Positions 11,514 through 30,319 of a DNA stretch of 64,000 nt are shown in pieces. The position numbers were made by a program, and so were the translations under genes. Each line of letters begins with the position of its first letter. Within the stretch, counting starts at the first letter, position 1. The DNA is taken from positions 124,001 through 188,000 of IMG/VR virus record IMGVR_UViG_3300028384_001500; one strand, given 5' to 3'. The notes under the pieces are model-generated. The model worked only from the letters and a program-made list of their open reading frames with translations. It was not told where the DNA came from and made no database searches.

Positions 11514-11807
11514 TTATTGGTTGTCGTAGGCACCAGCCATGATATCTTGACAGCATTCCATGATAATTCTTTTTGTAATTGGGCACTCACAACATTCAAC
11601 TAAACACATAATTGCTGCACAACAGTCTTCACGTGAAACACAATTTTTTGTTGACTTCGTCATTGAATAGTTGTGACCCATGTCTGGTCTTGAATCTGGA
11701 AATCCCACAGGATTCATCCCGCCATGACCCATATTAGTCATACCCATCATTTTGAATTCTTTTAAAATCATTTTTCTAATATTAGAGCGATTAATATTTT
11801 TTTCCAT
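11514..11807 (-). CDS. Small Cys/Met-rich protein with a leader-like N terminus
   Basis: NRSNIRKMILKE N terminus; 9 Cys in the C-terminal half (CC, CCEC, CC); AAGGA RBS. Confidence 0.7.
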   Translation of the reverse strand: MEKNINRSNIRKMILKEFKMMGMTNMGHGGMNPVGFPDSRPDMGHNYSMTKSTKNCVSREDCCAAIMCLVECCECPITKRIIMECCQDIMAGAYDNQ

Positions 11808-11837: not shown

Positions 11838-12242
11838 CTACTTATTTTTATATTTTCTTTTTGAATGCAACAGATCTTCTTCATGCCCGTCAACACCGTG
11901 TGACTCATGTGCTTCACCTAAATCATCGCTGTCTTTTACTTTCTCTAGTAAAATTGCAGGTATGTCAGTCTCAATTCCAATGCTAGGCCATTTTACATCA
12001 TATATTGCTATATGACCGCTTTCGTCCAGGCTGTGCCAGAGCACCTTTCCTATTTCATTTAAAGCAGAATCCTTCCGCTTAACATGAGTTAGTCATGTAT
12101 GGCCAATAATGTCATCAGCTGACTTGTCTCTTTTGGTTACATGGTCTAATCCGTAAGAGAACCCTTGTTCTTTACTAGCATAAGAAAGCCTATCTAATTC
12201 TTCTTTAATCAAACTTTTTAATTGGTTTTTTGTTAATTTCAT
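11838..12242 (-). CDS. Candidate selenoprotein, 134 aa, UGA at codon 50 (12093..12095) read as Sec
   Basis: ATG at 12242 overlaps the upstream stop (ATGA). Reads MKLTKNQLKSLIKEE...IIGHT-UGA-LTHVKRKDSALNEIGKVLWHSLDESGHIAIYDVKW..., in frame with track ORF 11838..12044. SECIS-like hairpin follows the UGA. Confidence 0.75.
12056..12086 (-). promoter_or_regulatory. Putative bacterial-type SECIS element
   Basis: CAUGUUAAGCGGAA-GGA-UUCUGCUUUAAAUG: 8-bp upper stem, bulged U, lower stem; G-starting apical loop begins 20 nt after the UGA. Confidence 0.7.
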
Positions 12243-12574
12243 TTTTTAGGCCCACCTTCTGTATATCCTGTGCAACTATTTGTTGCTTTACAAGAAAAGC
12301 CAAATGCGTGACAAAAAGCTGATGATTTATTCTTTGCAGTTACACCCGCCTCAATAGCTTCTTTTGATATATCATATGCAGCACAAGTTTTACAATATTT
12401 AACTTTGCCAAATTTATCTTCTAAAAACTCTTTTAAATCTTTGCGTTTTTTAGGATTACCGTATTTAGCATTTTTAATTGCTTTTTGTTTTCCGCCTTTG
12501 ACTTTCTTAAATGCATTGGCTTTTTTAGCAGCTTCTCTAATTAAATATTTTAGCTGCCCTAATGTAATTCTCAT
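12239..12574 (-). CDS. Leader-bearing small protein with a Cys cluster (HiPIP-like spacing)
   Basis: MRITLGQLKYLIRE leader; CKTC...FCHAFGFSCKATNSC. Confidence 0.75.
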   Translation of the reverse strand: MRITLGQLKYLIREAAKKANAFKKVKGGKQKAIKNAKYGNPKKRKDLKEFLEDKFGKVKYCKTCAAYDISKEAIEAGVTAKNKSSAFCHAFGFSCKATNSCTGYTEGGPKK

Positions 12575-13863
12575 TTTTTCTTTCTCATTCTTTTTGTTTT
12601 CTTTTTGCTAGCTTCTTTACGCTTTTTTGCATACTCGTATGCTTTTTTAAGACGCTTTTTCGTAGCAGGATCTTTTGCATTTTTATACGCAGCTCGTACA
12701 CGCTGGTGTATAAGATTAATTATCTGTGACTGTCGCTTATGACTTTTAGATTTAAAACTTTTTTTAGATAGCGTTTTTTTAATATCAGAAGCGGTTTTAA
12801 ATTTTACAGACACAGTATCCTTAGGATTTTCGTCTGTGTAGAGTCTTCTTCCACTACCTTTAGGTTTTTTACCTGTACCTACCTTTGGATCTTTTTTTTT
12901 TGACTCGCGCAAGTTTTCTTTTTTTGCTTTTTCTCGATTATAGGCTTCTATTTCTTCCGGGGTAGGTGAATTATTAAATGCATCTACAAAGTCAGATCTT
13001 CTGGTGCCTTGTATTCGATAATCGTCAAAATATACATTGTCTGTCCTAGATGTAAGCATGTTCCACACTTCTGCCATGGATTGTATACCTCTTTTTCGCC
13101 AAGAACTGGTTGTTCCAAAAGGATTGCGTGCCATGGCAGCAGCAGACTCAGGTGAAACTCCATTATAAAAGACGTCGTCAAGAACACCTTCCTCGTGGTA
13201 TAATTCTGAATAACAATCGTCATCCGGATCAGGTGTTAGGCCAAAAAAGTCCATTTCGTCACTTCCTTTCGCTGTGGTCTGCTTATAATACACACCTTGA
13301 TTCTCAGGAGCATTAACTTTAGAGTCAATAATGTTATTAATGACATCAGTGTTTCCACCTTCAAAGTCAGTTGTTATACCAGCTGGTGCAATTGGTGCGA
13401 CAACCTCACAATAATAAAAAATCAGGTCAAACATTAGATCGCCAATACCTCTGTTTTGGGCATTTACAGAAGTATAAATTGAACTAACTGAATATGTATT
13501 TGGTATACATTTAGCATCATGCCAGTATCTTACTTCTCCGTCTTCGTCTGCACCAACGGCGTCTTCTTCAACGCCCGGGCCTAATTTTCTTATGTAATGT
13601 ATTCTTTGATCGACGACTTCGTCATCTAATACTTTTAAAGGGTGTCCTTGCAATTGTCCTGTCAACTTAGTTAAGGTCGCTGACGCAATCAAGTCCCCTC
13701 CGTTAAAAAGGTCAAGTATTGTGATCTCTTCGTTGCCGTCATCTAAAGTTTCTTGATATCTTAAAGATAGACTAGGTAACGCTGCTAGTAGACTGTCATG
13801 TTGAGTAGTCTCAAGTATTATCTTTCTGATTGATTCTCTGATAAGTTTTCTTAATAAATTCAT
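12571..13863 (-). CDS. Leader-bearing protein with a GNAT-like domain and a basic C-terminal domain
   Basis: MNLLRKLIRE; VSSIYTSVNAQNRGIGDLMF resembles GNAT motif A (QxxGxG); Lys-rich tail GTGKKPKGSGRRLYTDENPKDTV after an internal LRE. Confidence 0.6.
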   Translation of the reverse strand: MNLLRKLIRESIRKIILETTQHDSLLAALPSLSLRYQETLDDGNEEITILDLFNGGDLIASATLTKLTGQLQGHPLKVLDDEVVDQRIHYIRKLGPGVEEDAVGADEDGEVRYWHDAKCIPNTYSVSSIYTSVNAQNRGIGDLMFDLIFYYCEVVAPIAPAGITTDFEGGNTDVINNIIDSKVNAPENQGVYYKQTTAKGSDEMDFFGLTPDPDDDCYSELYHEEGVLDDVFYNGVSPESAAAMARNPFGTTSSWRKRGIQSMAEVWNMLTSRTDNVYFDDYRIQGTRRSDFVDAFNNSPTPEEIEAYNREKAKKENLRESKKKDPKVGTGKKPKGSGRRLYTDENPKDTVSVKFKTASDIKKTLSKKSFKSKSHKRQSQIINLIHQRVRAAYKNAKDPATKKRLKKAYEYAKKRKEASKKKTKRMRKKK

Positions 13864-14032
13864 TAAAACGTCTCACGCGTGTTTTTACTATTCCTTTATA
13901 TATATCAAAGTACATATGCAAAATAAAAAGAAATACTAGTAGAAAGAATAAGTCCAACGGGAACATGTAATCATCCCATAATTTTTGCAATCTTTTTTTA
14001 ATGCCCATATTTTTATGTATACATTCTATACT

Positions 14033-14061
14033 AAAAAAGACGCCTCGAAAGACGTCTTTTT
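14033..14061 (-). terminator. Intrinsic terminator with UUCG loop
   Basis: AGACGTCT-TTCG-AGGCGTCT-TTTTT. Confidence 0.8.
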
Positions 14062-14081
14062 AATAAAACTTAAATTAGCTA

Positions 14082-14345
14082 TTAGGTTTGGCCACCTACT
14101 TCAGTACCATCACTATCTTGTGTTGGAACTGCATTATGTCTTTTAAGAGTACCATCTGACTCAAAAAACAAATACCAAGTTTCTCCTGTTGGTGCTTGCA
14201 AAGAAATATAAGATGGTTTGTTTGAATCAGATCCACATTTTAAATCAATGTGTCCTGCTTCTGCTGATCCTGAGACAGCAACTTCAAAGCCACCGCCTGA
14301 TAGCTGATGTAGACCTTTTGTGTCCGTTACGAGTACTTTTGGCAT
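14082..14345 (-). CDS. Small beta-rich protein, possible virion decoration protein
   Basis: 87 aa, AAGGAG RBS, own leader and terminator. Confidence 0.6.
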   Translation of the reverse strand: MPKVLVTDTKGLHQLSGGGFEVAVSGSAEAGHIDLKCGSDSNKPSYISLQAPTGETWYLFFESDGTLKRHNAVPTQDSDGTEVGGQT

Positions 14346-14366
14346 AATCTTCTCCTTTTATAAATT

Positions 14367-14423
14367 TGTCCACAAGATTCCGACACGACGGTGGGATCGC
14401 CTTTATGCTGTGTGCCGGGCCTG
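14367..14423 (-). ncRNA. Candidate structured 5' leader RNA (possible pseudoknot)
   Basis: GC-rich island in an AT-rich intergenic region; CCGGCAC/GUGUCGG stem, inner GGCG/CGUC hairpin whose loop CCAC is complementary to downstream GUGG. Confidence 0.45.
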
Positions 14424-14433
14424 TTTATATTTA

Positions 14434-14682
14434 TTAACTAAAAATTAATTTTTCTAACATTTCTTTATATTGAGGTCGCGTCATACCTTCTGGTCGCTCT
14501 TGCGTTCTTTTTTGCAAGTACTCCAAAATTTTGTCAACCCTAGGGTCAGCTCCACTTTTTGCTTTTGCTAGTTCCTTTTTAAGAGCTGCAACTTCTTTTT
14601 GCAAAGCAGCAACTTTTTTCTCTAGGTCTGCGTGTTTATGTTCTGGTGCAGCAGATGCTGCTGTAGTTTTCTTTGCTGGCAT
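14434..14682 (-). CDS. Small coiled-coil hypothetical protein
   Basis: GGAGG RBS; heptads LEKKVAALQKEVAALKKEL. Confidence 0.75.
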   Translation of the reverse strand: MPAKKTTAASAAPEHKHADLEKKVAALQKEVAALKKELAKAKSGADPRVDKILEYLQKRTQERPEGMTRPQYKEMLEKLIFS

Positions 14683-14763
14683 GTTTTCCTCCGTTTATTT
14701 GTTATATTATAACATGTCTAGTATAAATATAAATAATAATATCTTTTTTCCAGGAGGTCATAT

Positions 14764-15102
14764 ATGAAACCCATCATCATTCAAAACAGCAAAATACCTG
14801 TTTATTTGTCAATATTTATTAGCATTGGTGCAATTACTCTGTTCCCTTTTATTATCTCACGAGATGAAATGAGCGAAACCACAATAAGACATGAATGCAT
14901 ACACATAGAACAACAACGTGAGCTCTGGGTTGTTCCTTTTTATCTACTATATGGTTTTTATTGGCTCAAAGGAAAGTTGTCAGGAATGACAAACGACGAG
15001 GCTTATATGAATATTCCGTTTGAACAAGAAGCTTATCGAAAAATGTATGACAAAGAGTATTTAAAAACAAGAAAGCGTTTTGCCTGGAAGGAGTATGTTT
15101 AA
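14764..15102 (+). CDS. Small zincin-like metalloprotein; only credible plus-strand gene
   Basis: AGGAGG RBS; AITLFPFI, RHECIH (HExxH), PFEQEAY. Confidence 0.8.
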   Translation: MKPIIIQNSKIPVYLSIFISIGAITLFPFIISRDEMSETTIRHECIHIEQQRELWVVPFYLLYGFYWLKGKLSGMTNDEAYMNIPFEQEAYRKMYDKEYLKTRKRFAWKEYV

Positions 15103-15947
15103 TAAAGTTCATCTGCCCATGATGAGTCAAATTTTGATGCAGGCATAGAGCTGTATCCTAGTTCAATTCTTAGATTGTCCATAATATTCTCTGCTTTTTT
15201 ATAAGTCTTTTCTGAATGTAGTTCGCTTTCATTATAAAGACGTTGAAGCTGATAGAGGGCGTCTAAAAGAGAGTCCGATCCATCAATATCTTTAGCTGCC
15301 ATTCTTGACGTGACGTCTATCGCTGCAGGTAAAATGCGATCAATGCTGGAAGAAAATACATCATTTGATGCATCTAAACCTACTACTTTATATTTGTTTT
15401 TTACAACTTCTTGCTTCCATATTTTTTCAAAGTTTTTCTTACCGTTAGGGCTTAACTGCGCTACTAAATCATTTGGAAATTTAAGCGCGTCTCTAGAGTT
15501 GAAACCGTTAACAAAAGTATTTAATATTTCATAAATTTTTTCTTCTGGGGAACCACCATACGGTCTTTTAAATGGTGTTGATTTGCATAGCCACATAAAT
15601 CCTGGTGAATACTCACTTGTAGGTGGTGCTGGATTAATACCTATACCGGCAATTTGAACTAGTATTTTTTCACGGCTTGACTGGTACCATAAAGTTTTTT
15701 TACCACTTTTATCTTTGCATAAAAAAGCATAATTATTATGCCAGTTTTGACGGACTAGAAAGAATTCATCAATGACTAAATACTCTCTATAATAATCTTT
15801 TATTTTTTGTCTATCTTGTAGTTCAATTTTTGCAGCTTCAGCTTCAGCTTCAAGACGTCTTGTTTTCTTACTTTTAAAGAAGTCAAAAAATCCTTCATTT
15901 AACTCTTGATATATCACCTGCCGGAGTTGTTTTTTTGTCATTAACAT
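15099..15947 (-). CDS. Leader-bearing hypothetical protein
   Basis: MLMTKKQLRQVIYQELNEG N terminus. Confidence 0.75.
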   Translation of the reverse strand: MLMTKKQLRQVIYQELNEGFFDFFKSKKTRRLEAEAEAAKIELQDRQKIKDYYREYLVIDEFFLVRQNWHNNYAFLCKDKSGKKTLWYQSSREKILVQIAGIGINPAPPTSEYSPGFMWLCKSTPFKRPYGGSPEEKIYEILNTFVNGFNSRDALKFPNDLVAQLSPNGKKNFEKIWKQEVVKNKYKVVGLDASNDVFSSSIDRILPAAIDVTSRMAAKDIDGSDSLLDALYQLQRLYNESELHSEKTYKKAENIMDNLRIELGYSSMPASKFDSSWADELY

Positions 15948-15950
15948 GTT

Positions 15951-16484
15951 TTAAATCCATTCATCGCTAAAACTATCTTCTTCAATATCAGGTGTCCATC
16001 CCGGGCTATATCTTTGAATTGCTGCGTCGTTTAATTCACCCACATATCTTCCATCGTACAAGTCTTCAACATCAATAATATGTGTAAAGGGAGCGAATCC
16101 AGGACGAGGTGTTCTTAAAAGATTAAGAACTTCACCAACTAAATCCTCGTTTTCTGGATAATGATTTTGTCCTAGAGAATTGTCAAACCTCTTTTGCTTA
16201 ACAACTAGACTTACACCGTTTGGAGATCTAGGTGGCTTAGGTATCTCTATGTGTGTTTCATAAACACTTAAGACTTCACTAAACATTTGTGCAAACTCAA
16301 GTGTGGCAAAATCAGGGTTCTGTATATACGTAAAAAGATAACCGTTTGGTCCGGGCTGTTGATATATGCTAACAGCTCGCATGCCTGGCTTTTTTAAGTG
16401 AGGTGGAAAGTTAACTGGGTATGATTCATAGCCACCAATAGACTCAAATATTAACTTTCTTAACTGTGATATTGTTATTTTCAT
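15951..16484 (-). CDS. Leader-bearing hypothetical protein
   Basis: MKITISQLRKLIFES N terminus. Confidence 0.8.
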   Translation of the reverse strand: MKITISQLRKLIFESIGGYESYPVNFPPHLKKPGMRAVSIYQQPGPNGYLFTYIQNPDFATLEFAQMFSEVLSVYETHIEIPKPPRSPNGVSLVVKQKRFDNSLGQNHYPENEDLVGEVLNLLRTPRPGFAPFTHIIDVEDLYDGRYVGELNDAAIQRYSPGWTPDIEEDSFSDEWI

Positions 16485-16493
16485 TGGAATCTC

Positions 16494-17888
16494 TCAAGTA
16501 AGTTGCATGTATTGCTCAAATTTTGGTCTTAAAGAATGTACAGGATTCATACCTATTTCTGCTTTAAAGGCTCCATTCTTCCATTTTTTAATTTCTATTT
16601 TTTCTAAACTAAAATATTCTTTAAATATACCGTACCTTTTAATAGCGTATCTAAACCATAATCCAACTAGTTTATTGCATAATTCATTATGTCTGTCTAG
16701 CAAGCTTTGCAAGTCTATTCCAATTTTTTGCAAACTATATGCATCTTCATACATTGCTTTAATTTGATCCTGTCCTTGCTTTTTAATTTTGTTAATACTT
16801 TCTTGACATCTATTGTAAAAGTGATTAATAACACTGGACTTTCTTTTAAAAGATATATCTTTTTTTGTCATATTTTTGTAACTTGCCTTTTCATGTTTAT
16901 TAGTGGTACTTGATCGAATACGTGCAACTCTCATCATTCCCACTACCCATGCTTCTATTTCTATCTTAGTAAAATAATAATATACTAAAAAGAGTGGTGG
17001 ATTACGATACTTATTATATGAATCAAATATCACAGGAGATAATCTTAAAAAATCTTCTGCCAAATAACCTAGCTGGTCTTTGATTGGCGAAATTCTTTTT
17101 ATACTTTTTACAAAATCATTAGTTTTTTTCAAAAAATCACGATCGTGAAGTTCTCCCATTTTGTCAACCACTAGCATTTCTCGTTTAGTTTTTAAATAAA
17201 ACGACTTGACCAGACTAGAATACTTCATTAATCCTTCACTCTCATCATATTGCCTATCAAGATAACTTATTTCGCTAGCCTCGGGAGCGTCTCTTAAATC
17301 AACTTTATTAAACTCATTAGATTGCTTAAAGTGATGTATTTCATGAAAAGCAGTTGATTGGAATTGTTCAATTACTTCATTAATACCACCGTAATTGTTT
17401 CTTTCTCTGTCATCAAAGGCTGCAAAACCTGGATGTATTCCAAGCGTCAAAGTTAATGTATTGTCGTAAGGGTTGTATCCACCACCACCCGGGAAGAACT
17501 TAAGACCTTCTAAAAAACCCGCGCTGTTATATCCTGAATAACGAATCTTAATTTTTAAGCCATCAAGTTTGTTTATAGATGAATTCTTATTCAGTGTTTT
17601 CTTTTTTGCGTTCTCTAATATTTCTTCACTTTCTTCTGATAGTTCTGAAAAAGCGTTTTTAATATCGTCAGTTACTTTTTTGTAATTTCCGCTATCTAGA
17701 TTACTCTCCAACCAAAAGTCTGTCGATTTTACATTTTTATTTAATGATTCTATTTTTTTAATTTTTTCTACTATCGCATTGATAGTTTCCCGGACAAGTA
17801 TTCCAGTACCTTGAGCGTCTCTCCTGGAAGCTTCTTTTAAAACAGATTTACATATTAATTTTCTCAATTTACTTCTTGTAATTTTCAT
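16494..17888 (-). CDS. Leader-bearing zincin-like metallopeptidase
   Basis: MKITRSKLRKLI..LKE; GGGYNP, FHEIHHFKQ, downstream YYFTKIEIEAW (third-ligand Glu). Confidence 0.65.
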   Translation of the reverse strand: MKITRSKLRKLICKSVLKEASRRDAQGTGILVRETINAIVEKIKKIESLNKNVKSTDFWLESNLDSGNYKKVTDDIKNAFSELSEESEEILENAKKKTLNKNSSINKLDGLKIKIRYSGYNSAGFLEGLKFFPGGGGYNPYDNTLTLTLGIHPGFAAFDDRERNNYGGINEVIEQFQSTAFHEIHHFKQSNEFNKVDLRDAPEASEISYLDRQYDESEGLMKYSSLVKSFYLKTKREMLVVDKMGELHDRDFLKKTNDFVKSIKRISPIKDQLGYLAEDFLRLSPVIFDSYNKYRNPPLFLVYYYFTKIEIEAWVVGMMRVARIRSSTTNKHEKASYKNMTKKDISFKRKSSVINHFYNRCQESINKIKKQGQDQIKAMYEDAYSLQKIGIDLQSLLDRHNELCNKLVGLWFRYAIKRYGIFKEYFSLEKIEIKKWKNGAFKAEIGMNPVHSLRPKFEQYMQLT

Positions 17889-18697
17889 TAGTAGGCCCCT
17901 TCTACACCACCGTCAATTATAACAAACCGGCCATCTTCTAGGCTTCTTCCAATATTTCCGTAACCTAGATCATTAATGTCATTTTCACTCATAACGTGCA
18001 ATAATAATTGCATGTCCGGGCAATTAAGAATTAAACTTTTTATACTTTCCAACCCTATACTTTCAAGCATACCAGTAACATGAGAATTATTAGCAAACAT
18101 ATAATTAGTCACTGTATTTAACCCATCATTAACAATTTCTTCAATTGTCCAATCGTCATAATTTATATCGTCAGGTAGAAAGGTCATAAATATAGACCCT
18201 ATTAATGAAATATTACCGGTAGTATTGTCAGAATATCGGTTAAATTCTTGCGATAATCTTTGCATACTTTTAAAGCTGCTAATAACTGCTTCTCCTAACC
18301 CATAAGGCGTGTGGATAGGAGGTGTGTTTTCAACAATAAGCCATCTAAACTCTGGGTCATGCACATAAACCTTTGGAAATATTTTGGTATAGCGGTTAAA
18401 TAAATCTATTTCTTTTTTATTGTATTTTACACCGCTATCGTTTCCTATGTCAATGTGAGCAACTTTTGCGACTAAGCCAGGCCGTCCATTAATTTCATAG
18501 ACACCGCGATAACTACCTGCGCCAATATTATCACCAATATTTTCCTCTAGCCAGCCGGGTAATTCTGGATATAGTCTTGAGTCAGCTTTTTCAGGATTAT
18601 CCATTAAACGAGTAATAGTTGGGCCAAAATGCTTTCTTTCTCGATCTGTAAAAGACTCCCATATTAATTGCTTTAACTGACTTCTTGTTATTTTCAT
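17888..18697 (-). CDS. Leader-bearing protein-kinase-like protein
   Basis: IGAGSYRGVY (Gly loop), VAKVA (Lys), helix-C Glu, NDLGYGNIG (catalytic loop), IIDGG (DFG-like). Confidence 0.75.
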   Translation of the reverse strand: MKITRSQLKQLIWESFTDRERKHFGPTITRLMDNPEKADSRLYPELPGWLEENIGDNIGAGSYRGVYEINGRPGLVAKVAHIDIGNDSGVKYNKKEIDLFNRYTKIFPKVYVHDPEFRWLIVENTPPIHTPYGLGEAVISSFKSMQRLSQEFNRYSDNTTGNISLIGSIFMTFLPDDINYDDWTIEEIVNDGLNTVTNYMFANNSHVTGMLESIGLESIKSLILNCPDMQLLLHVMSENDINDLGYGNIGRSLEDGRFVIIDGGVEGAY

Positions 18698-19386
18698 TAG
18701 TAAAATACGCCGTGTTGATTTGCAACTTTTTCAGGTAGCTTGTTAAGTCTTTTCATGGTAGGACTAAAATCGCCTTCTTTGCCAGAAACGATATTCATAA
18801 GCCTGTAATAGCCAGGGATATTTTGTAAAGTTTCAATAACATCCCAGTATTCTGGATAATCAGACGACTTAAGTAGTTCTTTAATCTCTACATTCATTTG
18901 ATGTTCAATTTGATCAACATGCTCGGTATAGTCTGTTTTTCCACCGTAATATGGGCTACCTTTTTGAAGGGCTGTATTATCTTTATAAGAATCTCCAACT
19001 TCTATCGCATCAAATGCTTTATCCATTTCATCATGTGCATAATCTCTTAGCGCTAATTCATCTTCGGTAAATCCAAAAGGTTTAAATTCACCTTGATCAC
19101 CAACCATGTCAGCCAATTGTACACCTTGATTCATACTAGCTATTTGTTTTTCATCAAAAGACGATCGTCCACGAGAGTCTATACCGTGTTTTAATCTATC
19201 TGGGGCAAAAGATCTAAGTCTTTCATCACTCTGTGCGTCTAAAAAGTCTTTTTTTGCATCGTGAGTGTGAAAAGCTTTCATGTGAGGACTACCTGGATCG
19301 TTAGTAGTGTCAAATGCATCACCTTCTGGATTAACATAAATTGTTTCTTTGATAAGTTTTCTTAATTGCTTTCTTGTTATTTTCAT
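18697..19386 (-). CDS. Leader-bearing hypothetical protein
   Basis: True start is likely ATG 19386 (MKITRKQLRKLIKET), in ATGA overlap with the upstream stop; the track start 19464 is over-extended. Confidence 0.75.
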   Translation of the reverse strand: MKITRKQLRKLIKETIYVNPEGDAFDTTNDPGSPHMKAFHTHDAKKDFLDAQSDERLRSFAPDRLKHGIDSRGRSSFDEKQIASMNQGVQLADMVGDQGEFKPFGFTEDELALRDYAHDEMDKAFDAIEVGDSYKDNTALQKGSPYYGGKTDYTEHVDQIEHQMNVEIKELLKSSDYPEYWDVIETLQNIPGYYRLMNIVSGKEGDFSPTMKRLNKLPEKVANQHGVFY

Positions 19387-20003
19387 TGTATTTTTACTCC
19401 TAGCCAAAGGCCTTGTGCTGCTTGTCTTACATACCCTTCTAAAAGATGCGCAGGTATAACCCACTTAAGAGGTTTTTGTTCAGGCATTATTCTCATATCT
19501 ATTCTGCCGCGAGTCATTGTGATACGAGTTTCTTGCTGTTTTATATAATTAATCTGACCTCTGTCAGATACTGTAGAAGTGCTTGCAAGGGTCATGTCTG
19601 GGTTAAACAATAGCATTTGCACTACAGTTTCATGATCGTCAATTGTGATAATCGTTATAATCGTTTCAACTAACATATGATTATTTTGATTTGCACATGC
19701 CTTGGCGTCCAATAAATAATTGCAATTATCGTATGCATAATCGATTGTATCTTTATCGTATACTTTAACAATAGATTTTTGTCCTAGGCGATCCCAAGTA
19801 CCTCGATCATTTTTTATTTTTCCGTCTTTCCAGTACGTGCTGTTATAGGCATAGACAGATTTGCTGCTTAAAGTCCCTTCTGTTTCTGCAGATACATTGA
19901 CGATTTTTGGCGTTGATATATACACCTCTAGGCCGCTGTGTTCTTCTACAACAATCGTCGTTTGCGCAAATGCCATTAAAATTATCAAAGCGTATAGTAA
20001 CAT
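19383..20003 (-). CDS. Hypothetical protein with a signal-peptide-like N terminus
   Basis: MLLYALIILMAFAQ; GAGGAG RBS. Confidence 0.7.
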   Translation of the reverse strand: MLLYALIILMAFAQTTIVVEEHSGLEVYISTPKIVNVSAETEGTLSSKSVYAYNSTYWKDGKIKNDRGTWDRLGQKSIVKVYDKDTIDYAYDNCNYLLDAKACANQNNHMLVETIITIITIDDHETVVQMLLFNPDMTLASTSTVSDRGQINYIKQQETRITMTRGRIDMRIMPEQKPLKWVIPAHLLEGYVRQAAQGLWLGVKIQ

Positions 20004-20016
20004 TCATTCTCCTCAT

Positions 20017-20622
20017 TTAATATTCTTCTGAGTCTTCTTCAGGGTCAATTCCAATTGGCTCACCTTTTTTATTTAACATTTTTGGCATTCGAATGTCTCC
20101 TGATGTTAAAGCTTCAAATCCCACGTTAAATTCACTGTATCCGGATTTAATCTCAATATCAAATTCTGCAGCTGCTTGGATCGGTATCTCTGTAATTGCT
20201 CTAAATGTTGCTACGTATTCATTGTAAGGCATGCCGTAACCCTTGATACCCTTCAAGCCGTTCGAATAAGACAGATTTAATTGTTCACCTATATAATTAA
20301 ATAAGATTTGTACACGAGGAATGCTAGAAGTATTTCCTCTTTGTACGCTATAAGGGACTTTATTGTCATCTACATATTTCATTGCTAAAATTAAATCTTT
20401 TACCAGCATCCGATAGAGATCAGGTTTGTATTTAATAAGTGGGTGTATTAGCTTGATAGCATGTTCCATTATTTTGCCAAAAAATAACGCTGACAAAAAG
20501 GGTGGATAAAGTAATGCATTATATGGGGTTTGCTGCACAGACTCCGGATCCCAAGACATCAATTTAATTTGATCATATCCGTCTTCAATTACTTCAAGAC
20601 TAGAAAGCTCATCCATCGGCAA
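20017..20622 (-). CDS. Hypothetical protein, possibly the frameshifted C terminus of 20609..23044
   Basis: No clear RBS; overlaps the upstream ORF; its frame is open further upstream (QVDLAKLLIKYLPMDEL). Confidence 0.55.
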   Translation of the reverse strand: MPMDELSSLEVIEDGYDQIKLMSWDPESVQQTPYNALLYPPFLSALFFGKIMEHAIKLIHPLIKYKPDLYRMLVKDLILAMKYVDDNKVPYSVQRGNTSSIPRVQILFNYIGEQLNLSYSNGLKGIKGYGMPYNEYVATFRAITEIPIQAAAEFDIEIKSGYSEFNVGFEALTSGDIRMPKMLNKKGEPIGIDPEEDSEEY

Positions 20623-23044
20623 ATATTTTATAAGCAGCTTTGCCAGGTCTACTTGAAATACTGTTTATCATTGTTTTGTAAGATTCCTTAACGTCCTCAG
20701 GTTTATTCATGTAACGCATATAATATTGAATCTGTTCTGCAGGATCTGGTATAAAATTCATTTGTTGCACAACACCGCTATCAAGCAATTCTTTTCTAAA
20801 TGGCGTTAATATCCTGCACAATTCTGTATAGTACTTTGTAAATTCAGATATAGCTTTAGATGTACCGATATCAAAACCCGGTATTTTGGCTAGTACAGGC
20901 AACAGATCTCTAAAGACATAATTATACTGCGTGCGAGACCTTAAAAGTGCATCTGTTGCCAACTCAATTAACTCTATTGCCCTAGGAGGAAGTTCGTAAT
21001 CACCTTTAATATGACCCATTATAGGAAAGTGCATCTTAGGTAAAATTGATGCACCCATTTTTATCATATCACCGTCAATATCACTTCCGCTAAATCCATA
21101 GTCTTCTGCTTTCTCAAAAGTCTCTTCCATGATAGGTAAAAATTTATCAAGAATATATTTTTTAACTTCGACACTACTGTTTCCATGATCAAGCATGTTT
21201 TTCATGGCACTAACTAATTCCTTAAGTGCATCAGACATTTGCTTGGACTCAGGTGTAAGATAAAACCCAAATATTTCTTGGATCCTATCATTTAGAACGT
21301 CATCGAATTTACCTGCAAGTATCATTTCTTCAAATTTGCGGTGTGCAGTTCCGACTTGATAGGAACCTGATGTTAATCGCTTTAAAGACTCTGAAATTGC
21401 GGGAATTAACCATGGCAGCTTATGATTGTGAAGAATGCCTTCCATGTTGTCGGTTACTTTAGAAATAAGTAGTTCGCAAATTGATGGATTAAAAACGACA
21501 GATGAAGCGAAAAAATTGGTAAAGAGATTTAAAGATCCTCCTGTAGATCTAAATTGGGATTTTGGTACAAAATCCCACTGGGTTTGATCAGTCATTGGTG
21601 GGTCAAGAAGACCACGCATTTCATAGTCATTTTTTAGTTTTTCAATTATATTATTTCTTTTGTCTTGTGACTCTTTTGAGTGTGGATCAAAAAGAAGGTC
21701 GTCAGTTAGAGTGAGATATGCAATACTTTCTTTAACTTTTTTACTTACTTCTGCATGCGCAGAGCCGATTAGCGATATAACAATATATGGGAATATTCCT
21801 TCTGTTGCCAATTCTGACTGAGCCATTCTGCTGTCTTTAACACGCGGTACATTTCTCATGTAGATATAGTCTAAAACAGAAGAGCTAAGATGAGTACTTC
21901 TAAGAACATTCATTACAAAAGCCATTCGATGGTTTGGTTCAGCTAGTGTTGATAAATGTTCTTTAAAGACTGTTTTGTTTCTTGCACGTGCTCTCAAAGG
22001 TTTTATATCTTGCATACCTATATTTTGTTGCTGTGCCCTATCCTCTTGTGACACACTAGAACCTTCTAAGCCTCCCGGGCCTTTAACAGCAAAGTGACCT
22101 TTAATGTATCTAATTATTTTCTGAGTTGTTTCAGGACCTAAAACTTGAATAAGACTGTCTTCTGTGACGCCATGCTGATTTCCCCAGACACTGGCACCTC
22201 CTGCATTACCAGGAAGCACAATACTGTCTGGGCCTGACCCATTAAAACCAATTGAAAAATTATCATTATATACATTTGGATCATTATAACACTGGTGTTG
22301 TGGGTATAAATTCCTATTGTCGTAAGGCCTGTCAGGTTTTTGTTTGGCTACGTAGTAAAGTGTAATACCTTGTCTAGTATAAGTTTGCCAATGTCCTCCA
22401 TAAACAGTACACCATGCGTTAACACCAATTGCTTGAGCACCTGCCATTGTGTACGGTCTAAGAATATCCCAACCGTCGATTTCCATGTGTCTAATTAGAC
22501 CTAATCCTCCAGAGACGTCTTCGTTTAAGTCCCCACCAATTGCAGCATATTTTTGCGCAATTGCTTCCTCAGCTGCCAATTTAGCATTACCAGAGGAATC
22601 TTCACCTTTAGTCGCTACTCTGTCTTTGCCTACTAGTTTTTCATATGCTTTATTGTTTTTTTGTATAAAGCGAGCATCAATATCGTCAATAATCCCGATT
22701 AGTGTTTTGTAATCAGGAATATTATTAGGATCTAGGTACTCATCGGGTAACACACCTTTTTGCTGGGAGTACTTTTCATGCATAAGCACACAAAAAATAA
22801 TTTGTCCATAGCTAAAATTTTGATATAAAACAAAATTACCGGTCTCATCAGATATAAACTGCCCTATCATTTTATCTAAAAAGCGAAGATACTTGTTTTT
22901 GTTGCGTATCATATTAATCGCTTCTGCATATCCGTACTCCGGCTTATTCATTGCTGGGTATTTATCTAATATGTCTTTGGCTTTAATTTCAAGCAACAAA
23001 GCTTCAAAAATAAGTTTTCTAAAAATTCTACGTGTTAATAACAT
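20609..23044 (-). CDS. Large leader-bearing hypothetical protein
   Basis: MLLTRRIFRKLIFEALLLE; internal AWCTVYGGHWQTY..LYYV motif of a type seen in large-phage proteins. Confidence 0.75.
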   Translation of the reverse strand: MLLTRRIFRKLIFEALLLEIKAKDILDKYPAMNKPEYGYAEAINMIRNKNKYLRFLDKMIGQFISDETGNFVLYQNFSYGQIIFCVLMHEKYSQQKGVLPDEYLDPNNIPDYKTLIGIIDDIDARFIQKNNKAYEKLVGKDRVATKGEDSSGNAKLAAEEAIAQKYAAIGGDLNEDVSGGLGLIRHMEIDGWDILRPYTMAGAQAIGVNAWCTVYGGHWQTYTRQGITLYYVAKQKPDRPYDNRNLYPQHQCYNDPNVYNDNFSIGFNGSGPDSIVLPGNAGGASVWGNQHGVTEDSLIQVLGPETTQKIIRYIKGHFAVKGPGGLEGSSVSQEDRAQQQNIGMQDIKPLRARARNKTVFKEHLSTLAEPNHRMAFVMNVLRSTHLSSSVLDYIYMRNVPRVKDSRMAQSELATEGIFPYIVISLIGSAHAEVSKKVKESIAYLTLTDDLLFDPHSKESQDKRNNIIEKLKNDYEMRGLLDPPMTDQTQWDFVPKSQFRSTGGSLNLFTNFFASSVVFNPSICELLISKVTDNMEGILHNHKLPWLIPAISESLKRLTSGSYQVGTAHRKFEEMILAGKFDDVLNDRIQEIFGFYLTPESKQMSDALKELVSAMKNMLDHGNSSVEVKKYILDKFLPIMEETFEKAEDYGFSGSDIDGDMIKMGASILPKMHFPIMGHIKGDYELPPRAIELIELATDALLRSRTQYNYVFRDLLPVLAKIPGFDIGTSKAISEFTKYYTELCRILTPFRKELLDSGVVQQMNFIPDPAEQIQYYMRYMNKPEDVKESYKTMINSISSRPGKAAYKIFADG

Positions 23045-25455: not shown

Positions 25456-26919
25456 TTATAAACCTGCCAAACGTTGCCATCTACTCAACTCATTGTTGGA
25501 AGACGTTGCGTTTGCCTGTGAAGAAGTAGTTGGGCGAGAAGAACTTCCAAAAACACGAGATTCTGAGATAGTGCTTCTAGTACCACCGGTACTTCTAAAC
25601 GTTTCAGTTAATGACTTATACAAAGATTTTGCTTCAGTCAAAGATTGTGCTTCATCCAAAGCCTTAATAACAGACTTTTTCTGACTTTCGTTAAGACTTT
25701 TGTTCTGCAACAATTTGTTAACATACAAAAGCTTTGCATTAAATAAATTGAGATCTTCCAACTGTTCACGAAGAGAATTAACAGCTCCTCTGTATTTATT
25801 CAGTTTCTCTGACTGAGATCGATTTTGACGTCTCAGCTGGCGAATTGCCTCGTTAAGCTTGTTGATTTGTGGTGGGTTTGTGAACACATCTTGTCCTTCT
25901 TTTCCGCCACCAAAAGCACCCTTAACACCTGCTTTTTTGTTGCCCGTTCCGCCATATGCACCGTTGACACCAGCTTTGCTGCCGCCTTTTCCACCGAAGT
26001 GGTGATCCATTTTACCTTCACGAACTAACCTTTTAACTCTGTTGATTTCTTGGCGAAGAACACGTGGATCAACATTAAAAACTTCGTCCAACTGTTCCTC
26101 TTCACCTTCCGGATCTTCCATGTCCATGCCTTCCATGTCATCCATCTCTGGCATATCCATGTCCATGTCTTCCATACCCATACCAGCACCACCTGCACCA
26201 ACATCTAATTCAAGTTCTGCAATTAGACCTTCAACGGCAGCTGCAACTTCATCTTTTGAAAGCATTGCATCGTCGCCCATGTCTTCACCTTCCATGTCGT
26301 CCATCTCTGGCATATCCATGTCAGCGTCCATTTCTGGTGCTTCTTCTTCGTCTTGTTCTAATAAAGCTGAAAACTGCTCATAAAGTTCTGCCATTTCATC
26401 TGTCTCATCGATGTCATCTTCGTACATGCCCATGCCTTCGTTTGCTTCTTCAGCTTCTAATGATTCCCTTAATGTTCTAAGGTCAACTTCGTAATATTTT
26501 CTAGACATTTTTTCTCCTCTTTTGCTAGATAATTTATTAGCACTTTCATCAAGCTTGTGCGATAAATTTAACAGCTTCTCTCTTTGGTTATCATCCATTG
26601 AGGAAACTGCACCTTTTACAGCACTAAAAAGTGCTTTTTGTGACTTAGACTCATTTAGAGAATCTAAATTTTCTTCACCAATTAAGTTGACTAAAGAAGC
26701 CAATGCTCCTTCGTCAAGATAAACTTCTTCGTCAAGGCTTTCAGAAGTGTCATCATCTTCTGTTTCTTCACTCTCTTTTTCACCTTCAAGCAGCTGCTCT
26801 TCAATAAACTCTCTAATTTGAGGAGTTACTGATTCAAGAATTGCTTTTTTCGCATTTTCTTCTGCAACTTCTTTAAGTTTTTTTGCGTCTGCAATTGCTT
26901 CTTCAAATAATTTGCTCAT
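25456..26919 (-). CDS. Prohead core / scaffold protein (gp22-like)
   Basis: Highly acidic, coiled-coil, many (L/I)xE sites, NLFNAKLLY, C-terminal RWQRLAGL; GAGG RBS favours ATG 26919. Confidence 0.85.
   Translation of the reverse strand: MSKLFEEAIADAKKLKEVAEENAKKAILESVTPQIREFIEEQLLEGEKESEETEDDDTSESLDEEVYLDEGALASLVNLIGEENLDSLNESKSQKALFSAVKGAVSSMDDNQREKLLNLSHKLDESANKLSSKRGEKMSRKYYEVDLRTLRESLEAEEANEGMGMYEDDIDETDEMAELYEQFSALLEQDEEEAPEMDADMDMPEMDDMEGEDMGDDAMLSKDEVAAAVEGLIAELELDVGAGGAGMGMEDMDMDMPEMDDMEGMDMEDPEGEEEQLDEVFNVDPRVLRQEINRVKRLVREGKMDHHFGGKGGSKAGVNGAYGGTGNKKAGVKGAFGGGKEGQDVFTNPPQINKLNEAIRQLRRQNRSQSEKLNKYRGAVNSLREQLEDLNLFNAKLLYVNKLLQNKSLNESQKKSVIKALDEAQSLTEAKSLYKSLTETFRSTGGTRSTISESRVFGSSSRPTTSSQANATSSNNELSRWQRLAGL
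26129..26322. repeat. 35-bp direct repeat (26129..26163 and 26288..26322) encoding DMDMPEMDDMEG
   Basis: ccttccatgtc(a/g)tccatctctggcatatccatgtc occurs twice with one mismatch. Confidence 0.85.
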
Positions 26920-26959
26920 AAGATTAACCTCTGTATGCAATTAATTATTACGATATTTT

Positions 26960-27565
26960 TTAAATATCATAAAAATTGTTATTTATCTCATTAATAAATG
27001 ATCTTAGTCTATTAATATTAGATGTGTGCTTATTCAAGGATCGCTCATGTTGATCAATAATATCGTCTAAAGACATAATATTACTGTCGCTTTCATAGTG
27101 TCGTGGTAAAGGAGCTCTTGAAGTACCGTATTGAGTTGCAGTCATATCAACTCTAGGTCGACTATATATTTTTGGGTATGTCGTAGATGACATAGAAGTC
27201 TTTGTAACCTTTTGCCCTTTAGAACCTCTATAAGTTAAATTAGGTGACAACCCTTGTACAACCGTGTTTGTGTGGTTGCTATACTCTGCCAAGTTTGTAT
27301 ATGCACCGGTATAATTGCTTTGACGGTTTGCCTTGTGACCAATGTCTACATAAGGTCTATTACCATCTATTTTTGAGATTATATCTATATCTTCGTCTTC
27401 TATGTCTTCGACGTCATAAGTGTCAGGCTCATCATATATTCCATAATCGCCCCCTAAAGAATACTCGCTGCCCAAAGGTCCATTTTTGAGTTGACCGTAA
27501 CCTTGCCCAAGTTTTGAGTCGGCAGGGCCAAAATATAATTCATATAATTTGCTACGCTTTCCCAT
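26960..27565 (-). CDS. Hypothetical head-region protein
   Basis: 201-aa ORF in the head operon. Confidence 0.65.
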   Translation of the reverse strand: MGKRSKLYELYFGPADSKLGQGYGQLKNGPLGSEYSLGGDYGIYDEPDTYDVEDIEDEDIDIISKIDGNRPYVDIGHKANRQSNYTGAYTNLAEYSNHTNTVVQGLSPNLTYRGSKGQKVTKTSMSSTTYPKIYSRPRVDMTATQYGTSRAPLPRHYESDSNIMSLDDIIDQHERSLNKHTSNINRLRSFINEINNNFYDI

Positions 27566-28064
27566 CAGAACCCAAATAAGATCTACCAGAAATATAATTA
27601 CCTAGTAATGTTTGTTTAGCTATTTCTTTAGATGTTTCTGAAGGTGATACTAATCCTCCTTTTCCGCTACCAAACTCTATGTTAAATTGAGGGTTTGGTA
27701 ATTCACCTGCATACTCAGGCATGTCAGCAGCATTAATACTACCTGGCCCAGGAGACGTCAAGTTAGGAACATAAGGCGAAGCAGGAAGACCTCCTCCACC
27801 CGTTTCTACATCTTCTAAATTAGGAACTGGATTTTGTGAATTACCTTTAAAATCTCGATCAAAAGAATTTATACCGTGACCGTTGACAACAACACCATCT
27901 AAAGCTAGTTTTTGATACAGTTTTTTTCTTTCTTCGTCTGTCATTTCGCCAGTTAGAATAGGAGAGTGTGGAAAAGATGCTTTGATGTTTGCGTCATTTC
28001 TTGCACCTTTTGATTTATTAGGAGCCGGCGAAGTCTGTACTATTGTCTGTCTTTGTTCTGGCAT
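27552..28064 (-). CDS. Hypothetical Pro/Gly-rich head-region protein
   Basis: GGGGLPASPYVPNLTSPGPGS; operonic position. Confidence 0.7.
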   Translation of the reverse strand: MPEQRQTIVQTSPAPNKSKGARNDANIKASFPHSPILTGEMTDEERKKLYQKLALDGVVVNGHGINSFDRDFKGNSQNPVPNLEDVETGGGGLPASPYVPNLTSPGPGSINAADMPEYAGELPNPQFNIEFGSGKGGLVSPSETSKEIAKQTLLGNYISGRSYLGSDGKA

Positions 28065-28065
28065 T

Positions 28066-28275
28066 TTATTTTCCTTTGATCTTTTTGATTAAAACTTTTT
28101 TCATTTCATGAAGTTGCTTAGCTTCCTTTAAAGACTTCATTTGATAATTTTTTATCTTCTTTAAAAGGCGCAAAGATTCAAGGAGTTTTTTATTTTGCTC
28201 CATTTCAATTTTTTGACGCTCTTCTTTAATTAGTCTTTTAATAGTTTGTGGTGTCAGCTTAAAAACTTTTCTCAT
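28066..28275 (-). CDS. Small basic protein with a leader-like N terminus
   Basis: KLTPQTIKRLIKEE; AGGAG RBS. Confidence 0.7.
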   Translation of the reverse strand: MRKVFKLTPQTIKRLIKEERQKIEMEQNKKLLESLRLLKKIKNYQMKSLKEAKQLHEMKKVLIKKIKGK

Positions 28276-28320
28276 GACAATTCTCCTGTTTGCATCAATA
28301 AGTATCTATAAAAACAAAAT

Positions 28321-28872
28321 TTATCTATTTCTAATTGAAGGTGCAAAAGCTAAATTGGCCCACTTGCTCGATGCGCCACCAAACAATTCTTCAGGTAAAG
28401 ACTGATCAACGACTTTTGCTGCATGATCTCCTTGTGCAGAAACTGCCGGGCCTGACGGTCTTGACCCTTCTTTTTGCTCCCTAAGTGTTGTTGCTGCTGT
28501 GTCTGCAAATATATCACTCATAATTGGATCGTCTGTAATACCTTGAACTGTTTTTGTTATAGCATCACTTCTATTATTTTTTGCTGCACTATCTACGCCC
28601 ATCTTAATAGAATCTAAATATGAAGGCCTTCTAGTAGGTCTAGGTTTTCTAGCACTTGTCACTTGTGTTGCATGGTGAGAAAGATTTGAGTCAGAAATAT
28701 TTCTTGTTCTAGTTTGCGGTGTAGAGTTTTCATATGCTTCATGCAAGGTACCTCTTAGTTCTCTAGCCTCGCTAAGTGTTGCAACATTATTTCCTACTAA
28801 ACCTTCTGCCAATATTTCAAGTAAGCATTCTTTGACAATTGATTTCATTGCCTTTCTTGTTTTATTATTCAT
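28321..28872 (-). CDS. Hypothetical prohead-associated protein
   Basis: MKSIVKECLLEILAEG; directly downstream of the protease gene. Confidence 0.7.
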   Translation of the reverse strand: MNNKTRKAMKSIVKECLLEILAEGLVGNNVATLSEARELRGTLHEAYENSTPQTRTRNISDSNLSHHATQVTSARKPRPTRRPSYLDSIKMGVDSAAKNNRSDAITKTVQGITDDPIMSDIFADTAATTLREQKEGSRPSGPAVSAQGDHAAKVVDQSLPEELFGGASSKWANLAFAPSIRNR

Positions 28873-29475
28873 TTACCACCTCAGAATTTCATTAAACATT
28901 CTATCAATTTTATCTGTCTGGTTAAAAAATTTGTCTAAATCTTTTCTTTGTATCTTGTGTTCTTTAAGCATAAAAGCACCTGGCGTACTAGGTTCAGATA
29001 CCATATCAAAGCAAATTAATTGAAAATCATCTTGAACAACTTGGTTTCCACCTTTTGACACCGTCGAACCAACGCCTCTTGATGATATCCCTAAGGTTAC
29101 ACCACTTTCAATAAGCGACTGAATAATTTTTCCACTAGGTGTGTCTAAAATTTCAATTCTTCCGTATACGTCATCACCTTTCATATAGGCTTCTCTTACA
29201 ATATGGCTAACATTTTTAAGTTCAACTACAGAAGAGTCTGGGTGATCGCATTCACCTAATGCTCTATTTTCTCTAATCATTTTTTGATAATTCATAATTT
29301 CTCTTTCTAAAATAGGCCTAGGGTAAACTCTTCCGTTTTGGTTAAGTGTGTTTGCTCTCTGAATGACGCCTGATAACATTATCTTTCCACCAAACTTTTC
29401 TCTTGATTCTTTAATCATTTCTTTTGAACACTGGATAGGTGTCCATTCTCTTAAAACATTTAAATCATTAGCCAT
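28873..29475 (-). CDS. Prohead protease (gp21-like)
   Basis: NQNGRVYP, ALGECDHP, VSHIV, LGISSRGVGS, FDMVSEPSTPGA. Confidence 0.95.
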   Translation of the reverse strand: MANDLNVLREWTPIQCSKEMIKESREKFGGKIMLSGVIQRANTLNQNGRVYPRPILEREIMNYQKMIRENRALGECDHPDSSVVELKNVSHIVREAYMKGDDVYGRIEILDTPSGKIIQSLIESGVTLGISSRGVGSTVSKGGNQVVQDDFQLICFDMVSEPSTPGAFMLKEHKIQRKDLDKFFNQTDKIDRMFNEILRW

Positions 29476-29476
29476 G

Positions 29477-30319
29477 TTACTTTACCTCTTTTTTAATTTC
29501 TGATATCATTTTTGTAAGTGTTAAAAACTTAACAACATTTTGATCATCAACTTCTTGAGAAGAAAGTGTTTTAATTTTTTGTCTTACTTCGTCAAGTTTG
29601 TTTAGTAAATATTTGTTATCAGTTGTGTCTTCAAATTTTTCCAAAGATCTAAGTGCTTCTATTTTTTTAGTTTCAAAAAATTGCTCTAACTGGTTGTCTT
29701 TTTTATCAGAGAGAAACACATAACCTTCGATAATTCTTTTTTGATCGCTTGATAGGCTTCCTCCATAGTGTTTATTAAACTTTTCTGTCAATATTTTTAA
29801 AACTAAACGATCATTATGGGAAGCATTTATTTTATTTTCCTCATTTAAAGATACTTTTTCTTTTAACATGATCGACCCTAAGCGAGTTTCTAAATCAACA
29901 AGACTTTTAATATCTTTTTCTGACTTTCGCCATTCGTTCAGGGTTAATTGAATCACTCCTAAGTCTCTGTAGTTGTCAACATTTCTATAATAAAAATCTT
30001 TGTCTTTGATTTGGTAATTGATATCTTTTAGTAACATTGACTTTTGACGATCTAAAGTCTTTTCATTTAGCTGTTTGCTAGCAATCTTCGCCTCATTTAA
30101 AATGGAAGCAACAGTATGTGTATTTGTAATGTTAGATTGTGCCAGTGCATTAAAAAGTCTAAACTCTTTATAAAGGTCTGTCCCTTTTTTAAAATGCTTT
30201 TCAATAAGTTTTGTGGCAACTTTAGCTTCTTTCTTATTACCTTCAATTAATTTTGTAGCTACATGCTTAAGCAAAAGCTCGTAAACAATACCTACATTTC
30301 TTTTTTTATTATGTTTCAT
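29477..30319 (-). CDS. Hypothetical protein between portal and protease
   Basis: MKHNKKRNVGIVYELL; helical; head operon. Confidence 0.75.
   Translation of the reverse strand: MKHNKKRNVGIVYELLLKHVATKLIEGNKKEAKVATKLIEKHFKKGTDLYKEFRLFNALAQSNITNTHTVASILNEAKIASKQLNEKTLDRQKSMLLKDINYQIKDKDFYYRNVDNYRDLGVIQLTLNEWRKSEKDIKSLVDLETRLGSIMLKEKVSLNEENKINASHNDRLVLKILTEKFNKHYGGSLSSDQKRIIEGYVFLSDKKDNQLEQFFETKKIEALRSLEKFEDTTDNKYLLNKLDEVRQKIKTLSSQEVDDQNVVKFLTLTKMISEIKKEVK

Follow-up and report, generated by a model that had tools for sequence, protein, structure and literature searches.

In the IMG/VR virus record IMGVR_UViG_3300028384_001500 (236,652 bp, 35% GC, completeness rating of about 77%), we analyzed a stretch of 64,000 nucleotides, bases 124001 to 188000 of the record, hereafter called the window. 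Between window positions 11514 and 23044, nine open reading frames (ORFs) begin with the same short peptide, which we call the leader. Three genes of this array, P0001, P0002, and P0003, had been singled out in an original prediction, made from the window sequence, as leader-tagged cargo with kinase-like, zincin, and GNAT-like domains: enzymes that could be injected with the phage DNA, by analogy with packaged T4 Alt, and modify or cleave host proteins. These three and all nine leader-tagged ORFs lie on the minus strand of the window (coordinates are collected in Table 1).

A shared leader opens otherwise unrelated proteins

The leader is 14 to 18 residues long and has the consensus MKITRxQL[RK]xLIxE. 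Using a profile built from 16 copies, we found it on about 34 ORFs of the whole genome, which together encode 9,682 residues. Every copy that the profile found is on the coding strand and at the N terminus of its ORF, so the leader on which the predicted cargo was based is real. Once the leaders are stripped off, just two paralogous pairs are left among these ORFs. We conclude that the leader joins otherwise unrelated proteins. Its conserved positions are encoded by several synonymous codons (four for Leu8 and three for Ile12), which argues for selection on the peptide and not on DNA or RNA. The peptide has no hydrophobic core of the secretion-signal kind. It ends in [LI]-[IL]-x-E (positions 11 to 14), and Glu occupies position 14 in 62 of 66 relatives of P0001 from other phages. 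P0001 relatives on two unrelated metagenome contigs also lie within arrays of leader-tagged genes.

Many P0001 relatives open with a second type of leader, resembling MKLLLENWRKYLxE or MKKILKEWRxYIxE, which has Glu at the same aligned position. This suggests lineage-specific leaders that have a cleavage residue in common.

The leader resembles the N terminus of a head-module protein

The largest cluster of tagged genes is flanked by the capsid gene on one side and the head-tail adaptor gene on the other, and further clusters lie far from the head module, at 24 to 42 kb and 229 to 236 kb of the genome. The capsid gene, together with that of an acidic scaffold-like protein, places the array in the setting of head assembly. 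Within the head module, the gene for a T4 gp21-type maturation protease is followed directly by that of a conserved 183-residue protein. Homologs of the latter occur at 42 related loci, and they immediately follow the protease gene in all 11 of the loci for which gene order was listed. Most of them start with M-K-[LI]-[ST]-R-x-x-L-K-x-[IL]-V-K-E-C (in fuller form, MK[LI][ST]RxxLKx[IL]VKEC[LI]VEIL), and several, including those of L050, L047, and L067, score as leaders. As judged from these alignments, the N terminus of the head-module protein resembles the cargo leader.

In T4 itself, the cleavage motif is (L/I)-x-E. T4-family prohead proteases all cleave C-terminal to Glu (PMC5694885). The end of the leader suits a gp21-type protease such as the one encoded nearby, and cleavage after its Glu is predicted. 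Cluster position, terminal Glu, and the N terminus of the head-module protein together tie the leader to head assembly.

P0001 has a minimal protein-kinase-like fold

The motifs that had marked P0001 as a kinase (GAGSYRGVY, VAK, DLGYGN, and IDGG) are present in this ORF and go beyond chance, as they fall on nearly invariant columns of its family and where they should in a confident model of the fold. An exhaustive HMMER search yielded 121 relatives, counted as clusters at 50% identity, most of them bearing a leader of the MK[IL]T type or of the second type. In an alignment of 66 sequences, G59, G61, R64, K78, N93, E96, W119, N248, and D262 are nearly invariant: G61 is present in all 66, K78 in 65, N248 and D262 in 64 each, and G59 in 61, and the E96 column holds Glu in 59 and Asp in 7.

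An AlphaFold2 (AF2) model of P0001 shows a bilobal, protein-kinase-like fold, in which the N-lobe has a beta-sheet and alphaC and the C-lobe bears the catalytic loop, with a predicted local distance difference test (pLDDT) score of 90.6. Foldseek returned only kinase-fold proteins among the matches listed, the best being APH(2'')-IVa (E value of 2e-4). A search of 48,161 PDB representatives that did not depend on Foldseek gave kinase-fold proteins for 48 of the 50 best matches. The family profile, compared with PDB sequences, found protein kinases in almost all of the best 60 matches, with CK2alpha (E value of 8e-4) and the effector kinase SteC (E value of 0.037) at the top. These profile alignments cover the Gly-loop/Lys segment and the HRD..DFG segment (HRD..DWG in CK2alpha). 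The kinase-like call was thus borne out at the level of fold, by model, structure searches, and profile, with catalytic residues conserved in 66 relatives. At this level, P0001 is supported as a minimal enzyme of the protein-kinase-like kind whose set of predicted catalytic residues is complete.

P0001 is minimal in that its chain ends seven residues past the metal-binding Asp262; it has neither an activation segment nor the alphaF-alphaI substrate-binding lobe. Hinge and catalytic loop are separated by a helical region of about 100 residues, and the Gly-rich loop has the form GxGxxR with an invariant Arg. Sequence searches gave little else. Across Pfam, PHROG, and NCBIfam, the only family match was phrog_4301, of unknown function (E value of 7.8e-12), and 2 of the 66 relatives touched YrbL-PhoP_reg (E value of 0.005). 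Searching GenBank phages by tblastn with P0001 and two of its relatives returned no relatives, a pattern scan of IMG/VR found nothing, and a word-index protein search found P0001 itself only.

P0001 shares much with the minimal kinases OspG, NleH, HopBF1, Rio, Bud32/PRPK, and APH(2''): a bilobal fold, a Gly-rich loop, the beta3 Lys, the alphaC Glu, D-x4-N, the metal-binding Asp, and the missing activation segment and alphaF-alphaI lobe. OspG, HopBF1, and NleH align with the model over most of their length. The minimal effector kinases are delivered into a target cell, as P0001 would be if it is packaged. P0001 differs in having no significant family membership, in its GxGxxR loop, in the helical region, and in the early end of its chain. 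A phage comparator is the T7 gp0.7 kinase, which acts in host takeover and is made early in infection, not packaged. Its Gly-loop/Lys region aligns in register with the P0001 family, at an hhalign probability of 20% over 34 columns confined to the Gly-loop region, and one cluster among the ESM Atlas neighbors of P0001 carries the T7-kinase family.

P0003 is a GNAT-fold protein with a basic module

P0003 had been called GNAT-like on account of QNRGIG, a motif A-like sequence. That motif is where it was said to be, and it too goes beyond chance, lying on nearly invariant columns and in the right place in the model. The N-terminal 320 residues of P0003 have 39 homologs, one of which (P0008) is labeled a GNAT superfamily N-acetyltransferase by the JGI. 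Among these, Gln136 is invariant (39 of 39), Gly139 is missing from a single sequence (38 of 39), and residue 141 varies among Gly (28), Ser (8), and Ala (3). The AF2 model (pLDDT of 71.5; 75 to 90 in the core) has a GNAT-like order of elements, comprising the beta2-beta4 sheet and the beta4-alpha3-beta5-alpha4-beta6 core, with QNRGIG between a strand (residues 123 to 131) and a helix (residues 140 to 155), and a lineage-specific disordered insert at residues 69 to 117. Foldseek returned GNAT proteins for all of the top 50 matches, none with an E value below 0.02, and the Foldseek-independent PDB search gave members of the GNAT superfamily for 50 of the 50 best. The single best match was the GCN5 histone acetyltransferase domain; others included TacT3, AtaT, and acyl-homoserine lactone (AHL) synthases. 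In agreement with the original prediction, P0003 is supported, at fold level, as a GNAT-fold enzyme, and we predict that it is an acyl-CoA transferase.

Searches of Pfam, PHROG, and NCBIfam with P0003 gave nothing significant, a PDB profile search with the family gave no match, and tblastn against GenBank phages found no relatives. The homolog P0019 matched Acetyltransf_1 in the motif A region at an E value of 0.03 (15 bits against a cutoff of 20.7).

The family is modular: behind the leader comes a conserved core, with an optional basic module at its N-terminal end and another at its C-terminal end. The blocks DPDDDCY and GTTSSWRKRG are invariant in the C-terminal half of the family. The basic module at the C terminus of P0003, which contains GTGKKPKGSGRRLYTDENPKDTV, probably keeps the protein on DNA. 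As a separate observation, this module is portable: in L064:16201-16590 it follows a leader with nothing else attached, and in L003:15991-17214 and L005:14138-14668 it is fused to other proteins. Some homologs have a second basic module, beginning PGCYKVYPKKPKRGKKRRKALSKK, inserted after the leader.

Phages are described whose GNATs act on the RNA polymerase of the host, as are polyvalent proteins that are injected and contain a GNAT domain (PMC7824862). P0003 has the GNAT fold and the Q-x-x-G-x-[GSA] pyrophosphate loop in common with phiKMV Rac, the polyvalent-protein GNATs, TacT/AtaT, and Mom. Unlike the polyvalent-protein GNATs, it is a separate leader-tagged protein and not a domain of a giant one, and it differs from this set in its family-specific C-terminal half and in the fused portable basic module.

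P0002 carries a conserved HEIHH motif

The original prediction took P0002 for a zincin because of HEIHH and a downstream ExEA. Both are present (the latter as EIEA), and both are conserved in the two homologs, of 91% and 45% identity, that were found among 5.8 billion clusters: the three sequences do not differ in the F-HEIHH-F-x-QSNE block or in IEIEAW further along. The motif observation stood, but a family or PDB assignment did not follow. P0002 had no Pfam, PHROG, NCBIfam, or PDB sequence match, the PDB search with the family profile was empty, and the Pfam models MPTase-PolyVal, DUF3920, and Peptidase_M78, searched specifically, had no match in the genome. Nor did tblastn against GenBank phages find relatives, and an IMG/VR pattern scan, a scan of metagenome contigs, and five related large contigs added none to the two homologs.

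Is P0002 a metalloprotease at all? We lean slightly toward the view that it is not a zincin, and that its HExxH is a site of another kind, metal-binding or structural, or simply a helix that is conserved, in an internal protein that is mainly helical and has no peptidase activity. At every threshold tried, searches with P0002 came up empty for zincin families and for PDB sequences. The zincin-like neighbors (M78/MPTase and DUF3920) of its ESM Atlas model, which has a pLDDT of 0.57, reach template-modeling (TM) scores of just 0.22 to 0.29. By chance, the 9,682 leader-tagged residues should contain about 0.2 HExxH motifs; 1 was seen, which by itself does not exceed chance. We also counted on this side the PROSITE zinc-protease pattern, which we take to disallow both the His at motif position 4 of P0002 and the Lys two residues past the second His. 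Yet the motif block is identical in a homolog of 45% overall identity, a beta-rich segment, as read from the sequence, comes before the motif helix, as in zincins, and Glu192 lies six residues past the second His, which is the metzincin third-ligand spacing. Glu192 and Glu310/Glu312 are the candidate third ligands conserved in the three sequences. P0002 is accordingly a tentative candidate for a zincin-like metalloprotein, a call we would sooner doubt than rely on. It resembles the MPTase of polyvalent proteins and ImmA/IrrE (M78) in having HExxH in a predicted helix and in being a protein that is likely delivered with DNA; these families are among its weak Atlas neighbors, and they differ in that P0002 gives no sequence match to them.

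A better-supported metalloprotease candidate lies at 14764 to 15102. It is the only plus-strand gene in the array and encodes a leaderless protein of 112 residues with HECIH and, by eye, a hydrophobic N-terminal segment, matching phrog_15610 ('protease') at an E value of 4.3e-28. About 30 bp upstream, at 14722 to 14735, are two copies of the TATAAATA motif that overlap.

The body of the P0002 gene recurs, at about 94% nucleotide identity, on contigs from four runs, seawater or estuarine, that belong to different studies; its neighbors in the window are missing there. At an 85% threshold, the same contigs match the neighboring genes just at short leader-coding stretches. That the body is found without its neighbors suggests that cargo genes move as cassettes. 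The leader-coding matches are 37 to 53 bases long (window 16449 to 16485, 17853 to 17889, 18661 to 18699, and 19339 to 19391), and in the seawater contigs the P0002 body is joined to different leader copies. There are hints here that leader-coding DNA is a site of cassette recombination.

The leader as a proposed capsid-loading address

T4 internal proteins and Alt bear an N-terminal capsid-targeting sequence of 10 to 20 residues that is removed by gp21 after Glu (PMC5694885, PMC3012670, PMC12373910). T-even internal proteins have nothing in common but this leader, and their genes (ip) number three in T4, with at least 10 reported across related T-even phages (PMC12373910). With moderate confidence, we regard the array at 11.5 to 23.0 kb of the window as genes of the T-even ip kind, whose leader loads cargo into the capsid for injection. 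During assembly, the leader would attach a tagged protein to the prohead core, after which the gp21-type prohead protease would remove the leader by cutting behind the conserved Glu. The mature protein would remain inside the DNA-filled head until infection, when it would exit together with the DNA. We infer packaging, cleavage, and injection, and likewise the catalytic activity and substrates of the tagged proteins. The proposed analogy with packaged T4 Alt is strengthened indirectly by the T4-type capsid protein and protease, the leader Glu, and the N terminus of the head-module protein.

The likeness extends to several features: a short N-terminal leader on unrelated proteins, a terminal Glu for a gp21-type protease, variable gene arrays, and the same lineage of capsid, portal, and protease. 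Alt is, moreover, a cargo enzyme that modifies host proteins. The two systems differ in the sequence of the leader, which is slightly longer here, and in that packaging is a prediction here. About 34 genes are tagged in this genome versus three in T4. T4 cargo consists of small inhibitors or an ADP-ribosyltransferase, whereas the cargo here includes kinase-like and GNAT-like enzymes. In a literature search, we found neither this leader peptide nor packaged phage kinases described. We read the system as a variant of the T4 internal-protein/Alt system, one with a leader and a putatively packaged kinase family that this search did not turn up.

Several results weigh against capsid loading of host-modifying enzymes. 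No RNA run contains the stretch. For the T4 late-promoter motif TATAAATA, 3 copies were counted where 8 would be expected, so it is not enriched. Pfam Pkinase (PF00069) had no match in the genome at E values up to 10; Pfam Acetyltransf_1 had none either, P0003 included. At the catalytic Asp243 of P0001, 43 of the 66 sequences have Asp and 22 have Glu. The zincin member of the cargo is a candidate, as judged from its motifs. Finally, a tagged HAD nucleotidase-like ORF (described below) implies either that the cargo is broader than a protein-modification kit or that the tag may serve another purpose. The idea of a protein-modification toolkit therefore survives in part: the kinase-like and GNAT-like folds speak for it, but the nucleotidase-like ORF widens the cargo, and modification of host proteins is one of several possible activities.

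A less likely alternative is that packaging does occur but host proteins are not what the enzymes modify. P0001 would then act on a small molecule or nucleotide signal, like APH, MTR kinase, or choline kinase, and the GNAT on DNA (like Mom), on aminoacyl-tRNA (like TacT and AtaT), or on a metabolite. The ESM Atlas structure row for P0001 is indeed APH/choline kinase, the GNAT matches of P0003 include TacT3, AtaT, and AHL synthases, and its very basic module is of the nucleic-acid-binding kind. However, the P0001 family profile matches eukaryotic-type protein kinases and SteC, not APH, the aligned minimal kinases OspG, HopBF1, and NleH are effectors, and the top match of P0003 is a histone acetyltransferase domain. 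Because APH-type and protein-kinase-type structural matches tie, P0001 may have substrates of either class.

It is improbable that the leader is not a capsid-targeting propeptide and instead serves non-capsid docking, membrane association, or regulated degradation in proteins that act in the producing cell: the nucleotidase-like ORF looks metabolic, some tagged clusters are far from the head module, and packaging is itself argued by analogy, but the leader resembles the N terminus of a conserved protein beside the prohead protease, its Glu is nearly invariant, as expected of P1 for a Glu-specific protease, the largest cluster adjoins the capsid gene, the T-even precedent is exact, and a secretion-type hydrophobic core is missing.

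Phage lineage and reach of the capsid-loading model

The genome also encodes a T4-like portal protein and large terminase. By tblastn, the nearest cultured relatives of the capsid protein are those of distant T4-like phages of Flavobacterium, Microcystis, and Rhodothermus. The best matches have about 50% identity over 57% of the query, and none covers 80% or more. A related capsid gene is present on at least 596 IMG/VR contigs, and seawater, marine, and estuary metagenomes that come from seven studies contain small portions of the region. Searched by megablast against GenBank phages, 18 kb of the window gave no match. From the distant cultured capsid relatives and the marine metagenome matches, we conclude that this is an uncultured, apparently marine, jumbo T4-like myovirus. 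Against other T4-like capsid proteins, its capsid protein aligns in two pieces that make up about 50 to 57% of its length, which implies an insertion of roughly 270 residues common to the whole IMG/VR clade.

More speculatively, a large clade of uncultured marine T4-like phages might use one universal leader as the loading address for dozens of injected, interchangeable cassettes (minimal kinases, acyltransferases, and nucleotidases), much like the effector repertoire of a secretion system, with leader DNA perhaps serving as a recombination site. If the leader does address the capsid, the injected proteome of uncultured marine phages could be listed from sequence only. That proteome would extend well beyond T4's small restriction-enzyme inhibitors and one ADP-ribosyltransferase. 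It would include a family of minimal kinases that is widespread and as yet unannotated (121 clusters at 50% identity, almost all of them tagged) and GNATs that act before phage transcription, and would offer new candidates for host-takeover or anti-defense enzymes. The leader would also be a second natural one for loading foreign proteins into capsids.

Table 1. Positions of the leader-tagged genes, their motifs, and neighboring structural genes in the window
Feature	Position	Strand	Remarks
P0001, minimal kinase of protein-kinase-like fold, 269 aa (amino acids)	17888-18697	-	leader-tagged
P0001 leader, residues 1-14	18656-18697	-
P0001 G-loop GAGSYRGVY, residues 59-67	18497-18523	-
P0001 VAK, residues 76-78	18464-18472	-	beta3 Lys78 at 18464-18466
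P0001 predicted catalytic loop DLGYGN, D243..N248	17954-17971	-
P0001 IDGG, residues 261-264	17906-17917	-	contains metal-binding Asp262
P0003, GNAT-fold protein, 430 aa	12571-13863	-	leader-tagged
P0003 leader	13810-13863	-
P0003 GNAT-fold core	about 12904-13806	-
P0003 motif A QNRGIG, residues 136-141	13441-13458	-
P0003 basic C-terminal module, about 108 aa	12574-12897	-
P0002, 464 aa	16494-17888	-	leader-tagged; conserved HEIHH
P0002 HEIHH, residues 182-186	17331-17345	-
P0002 EIEA, residues 310-313	16950-16961	-
811-aa protein	20609-23044	-	leader-tagged; first gene after major capsid protein; leader score 20.6; no family match
229-aa acidic protein	18697-19386	-	leader-tagged; leader Met at 19386; mechanical ORF starts earlier, at GTG
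177-aa protein	15951-16484	-	leader-tagged
282-aa protein	15099-15947	-	leader-tagged; no function assigned
111-aa basic protein	12239-12574	-	leader-tagged
49-aa ORF	12093-12242	-	leader-tagged; leader score 18.4
97-aa ORF	11514-11807	-	leader-tagged
Major capsid protein, T4 gp23-like, 649 aa	23469-25418	-	phrog_138, E 6.3e-74; tblastn to T4-like capsid proteins
Scaffold-like acidic protein	25456-26940	-	many (L/I)xE sites
Head-module protein, 183 aa, conserved	28321-28872	-	directly after protease gene
T4 gp21-type head maturation protease	28873-29475	-	phrog_207, E 3.7e-53
Tail-sheath paralogue 1, very long, 988 aa	2232-5198		phrog_23, E about 1e-57
Tail-sheath paralogue 2, very long, 1049 aa	5221-8370		phrog_23, E about 1e-57; adjacent to first

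Other leader-tagged genes

Among the smaller tagged genes of the array, those of 97 and 111 codons have homologs downstream of the capsid gene in related contigs. An apparent homolog of the 177-residue protein, recognized by eye over the N-terminal 40 residues, adjoins a P0001 relative on contig L082. The 49-residue ORF consists of little beyond a leader and overlaps the stop of the 111-residue gene; it could be what remains of a cassette, or else a cargo peptide of very small size.

The nucleotidase-like ORF lies at 38789 to 39460 of the genome (L084:14789-15460, minus strand), where it starts with TTG and encodes a tagged protein of 223 residues. It matches the 5'-3' deoxyribonucleotidase family phrog_2643 (E value of 3.5e-20) and, weakly, a HAD hydrolase family, and from these matches it may be a tagged enzyme of nucleotide metabolism. 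In the same part of the genome, at 26415 to 31000 (L084:2415-7000), tandem leader-tagged paralogues of 764 and 763 residues match each other at an E value of 2e-177 and match no family. Among the tagged proteins, just the 811-residue one is larger.

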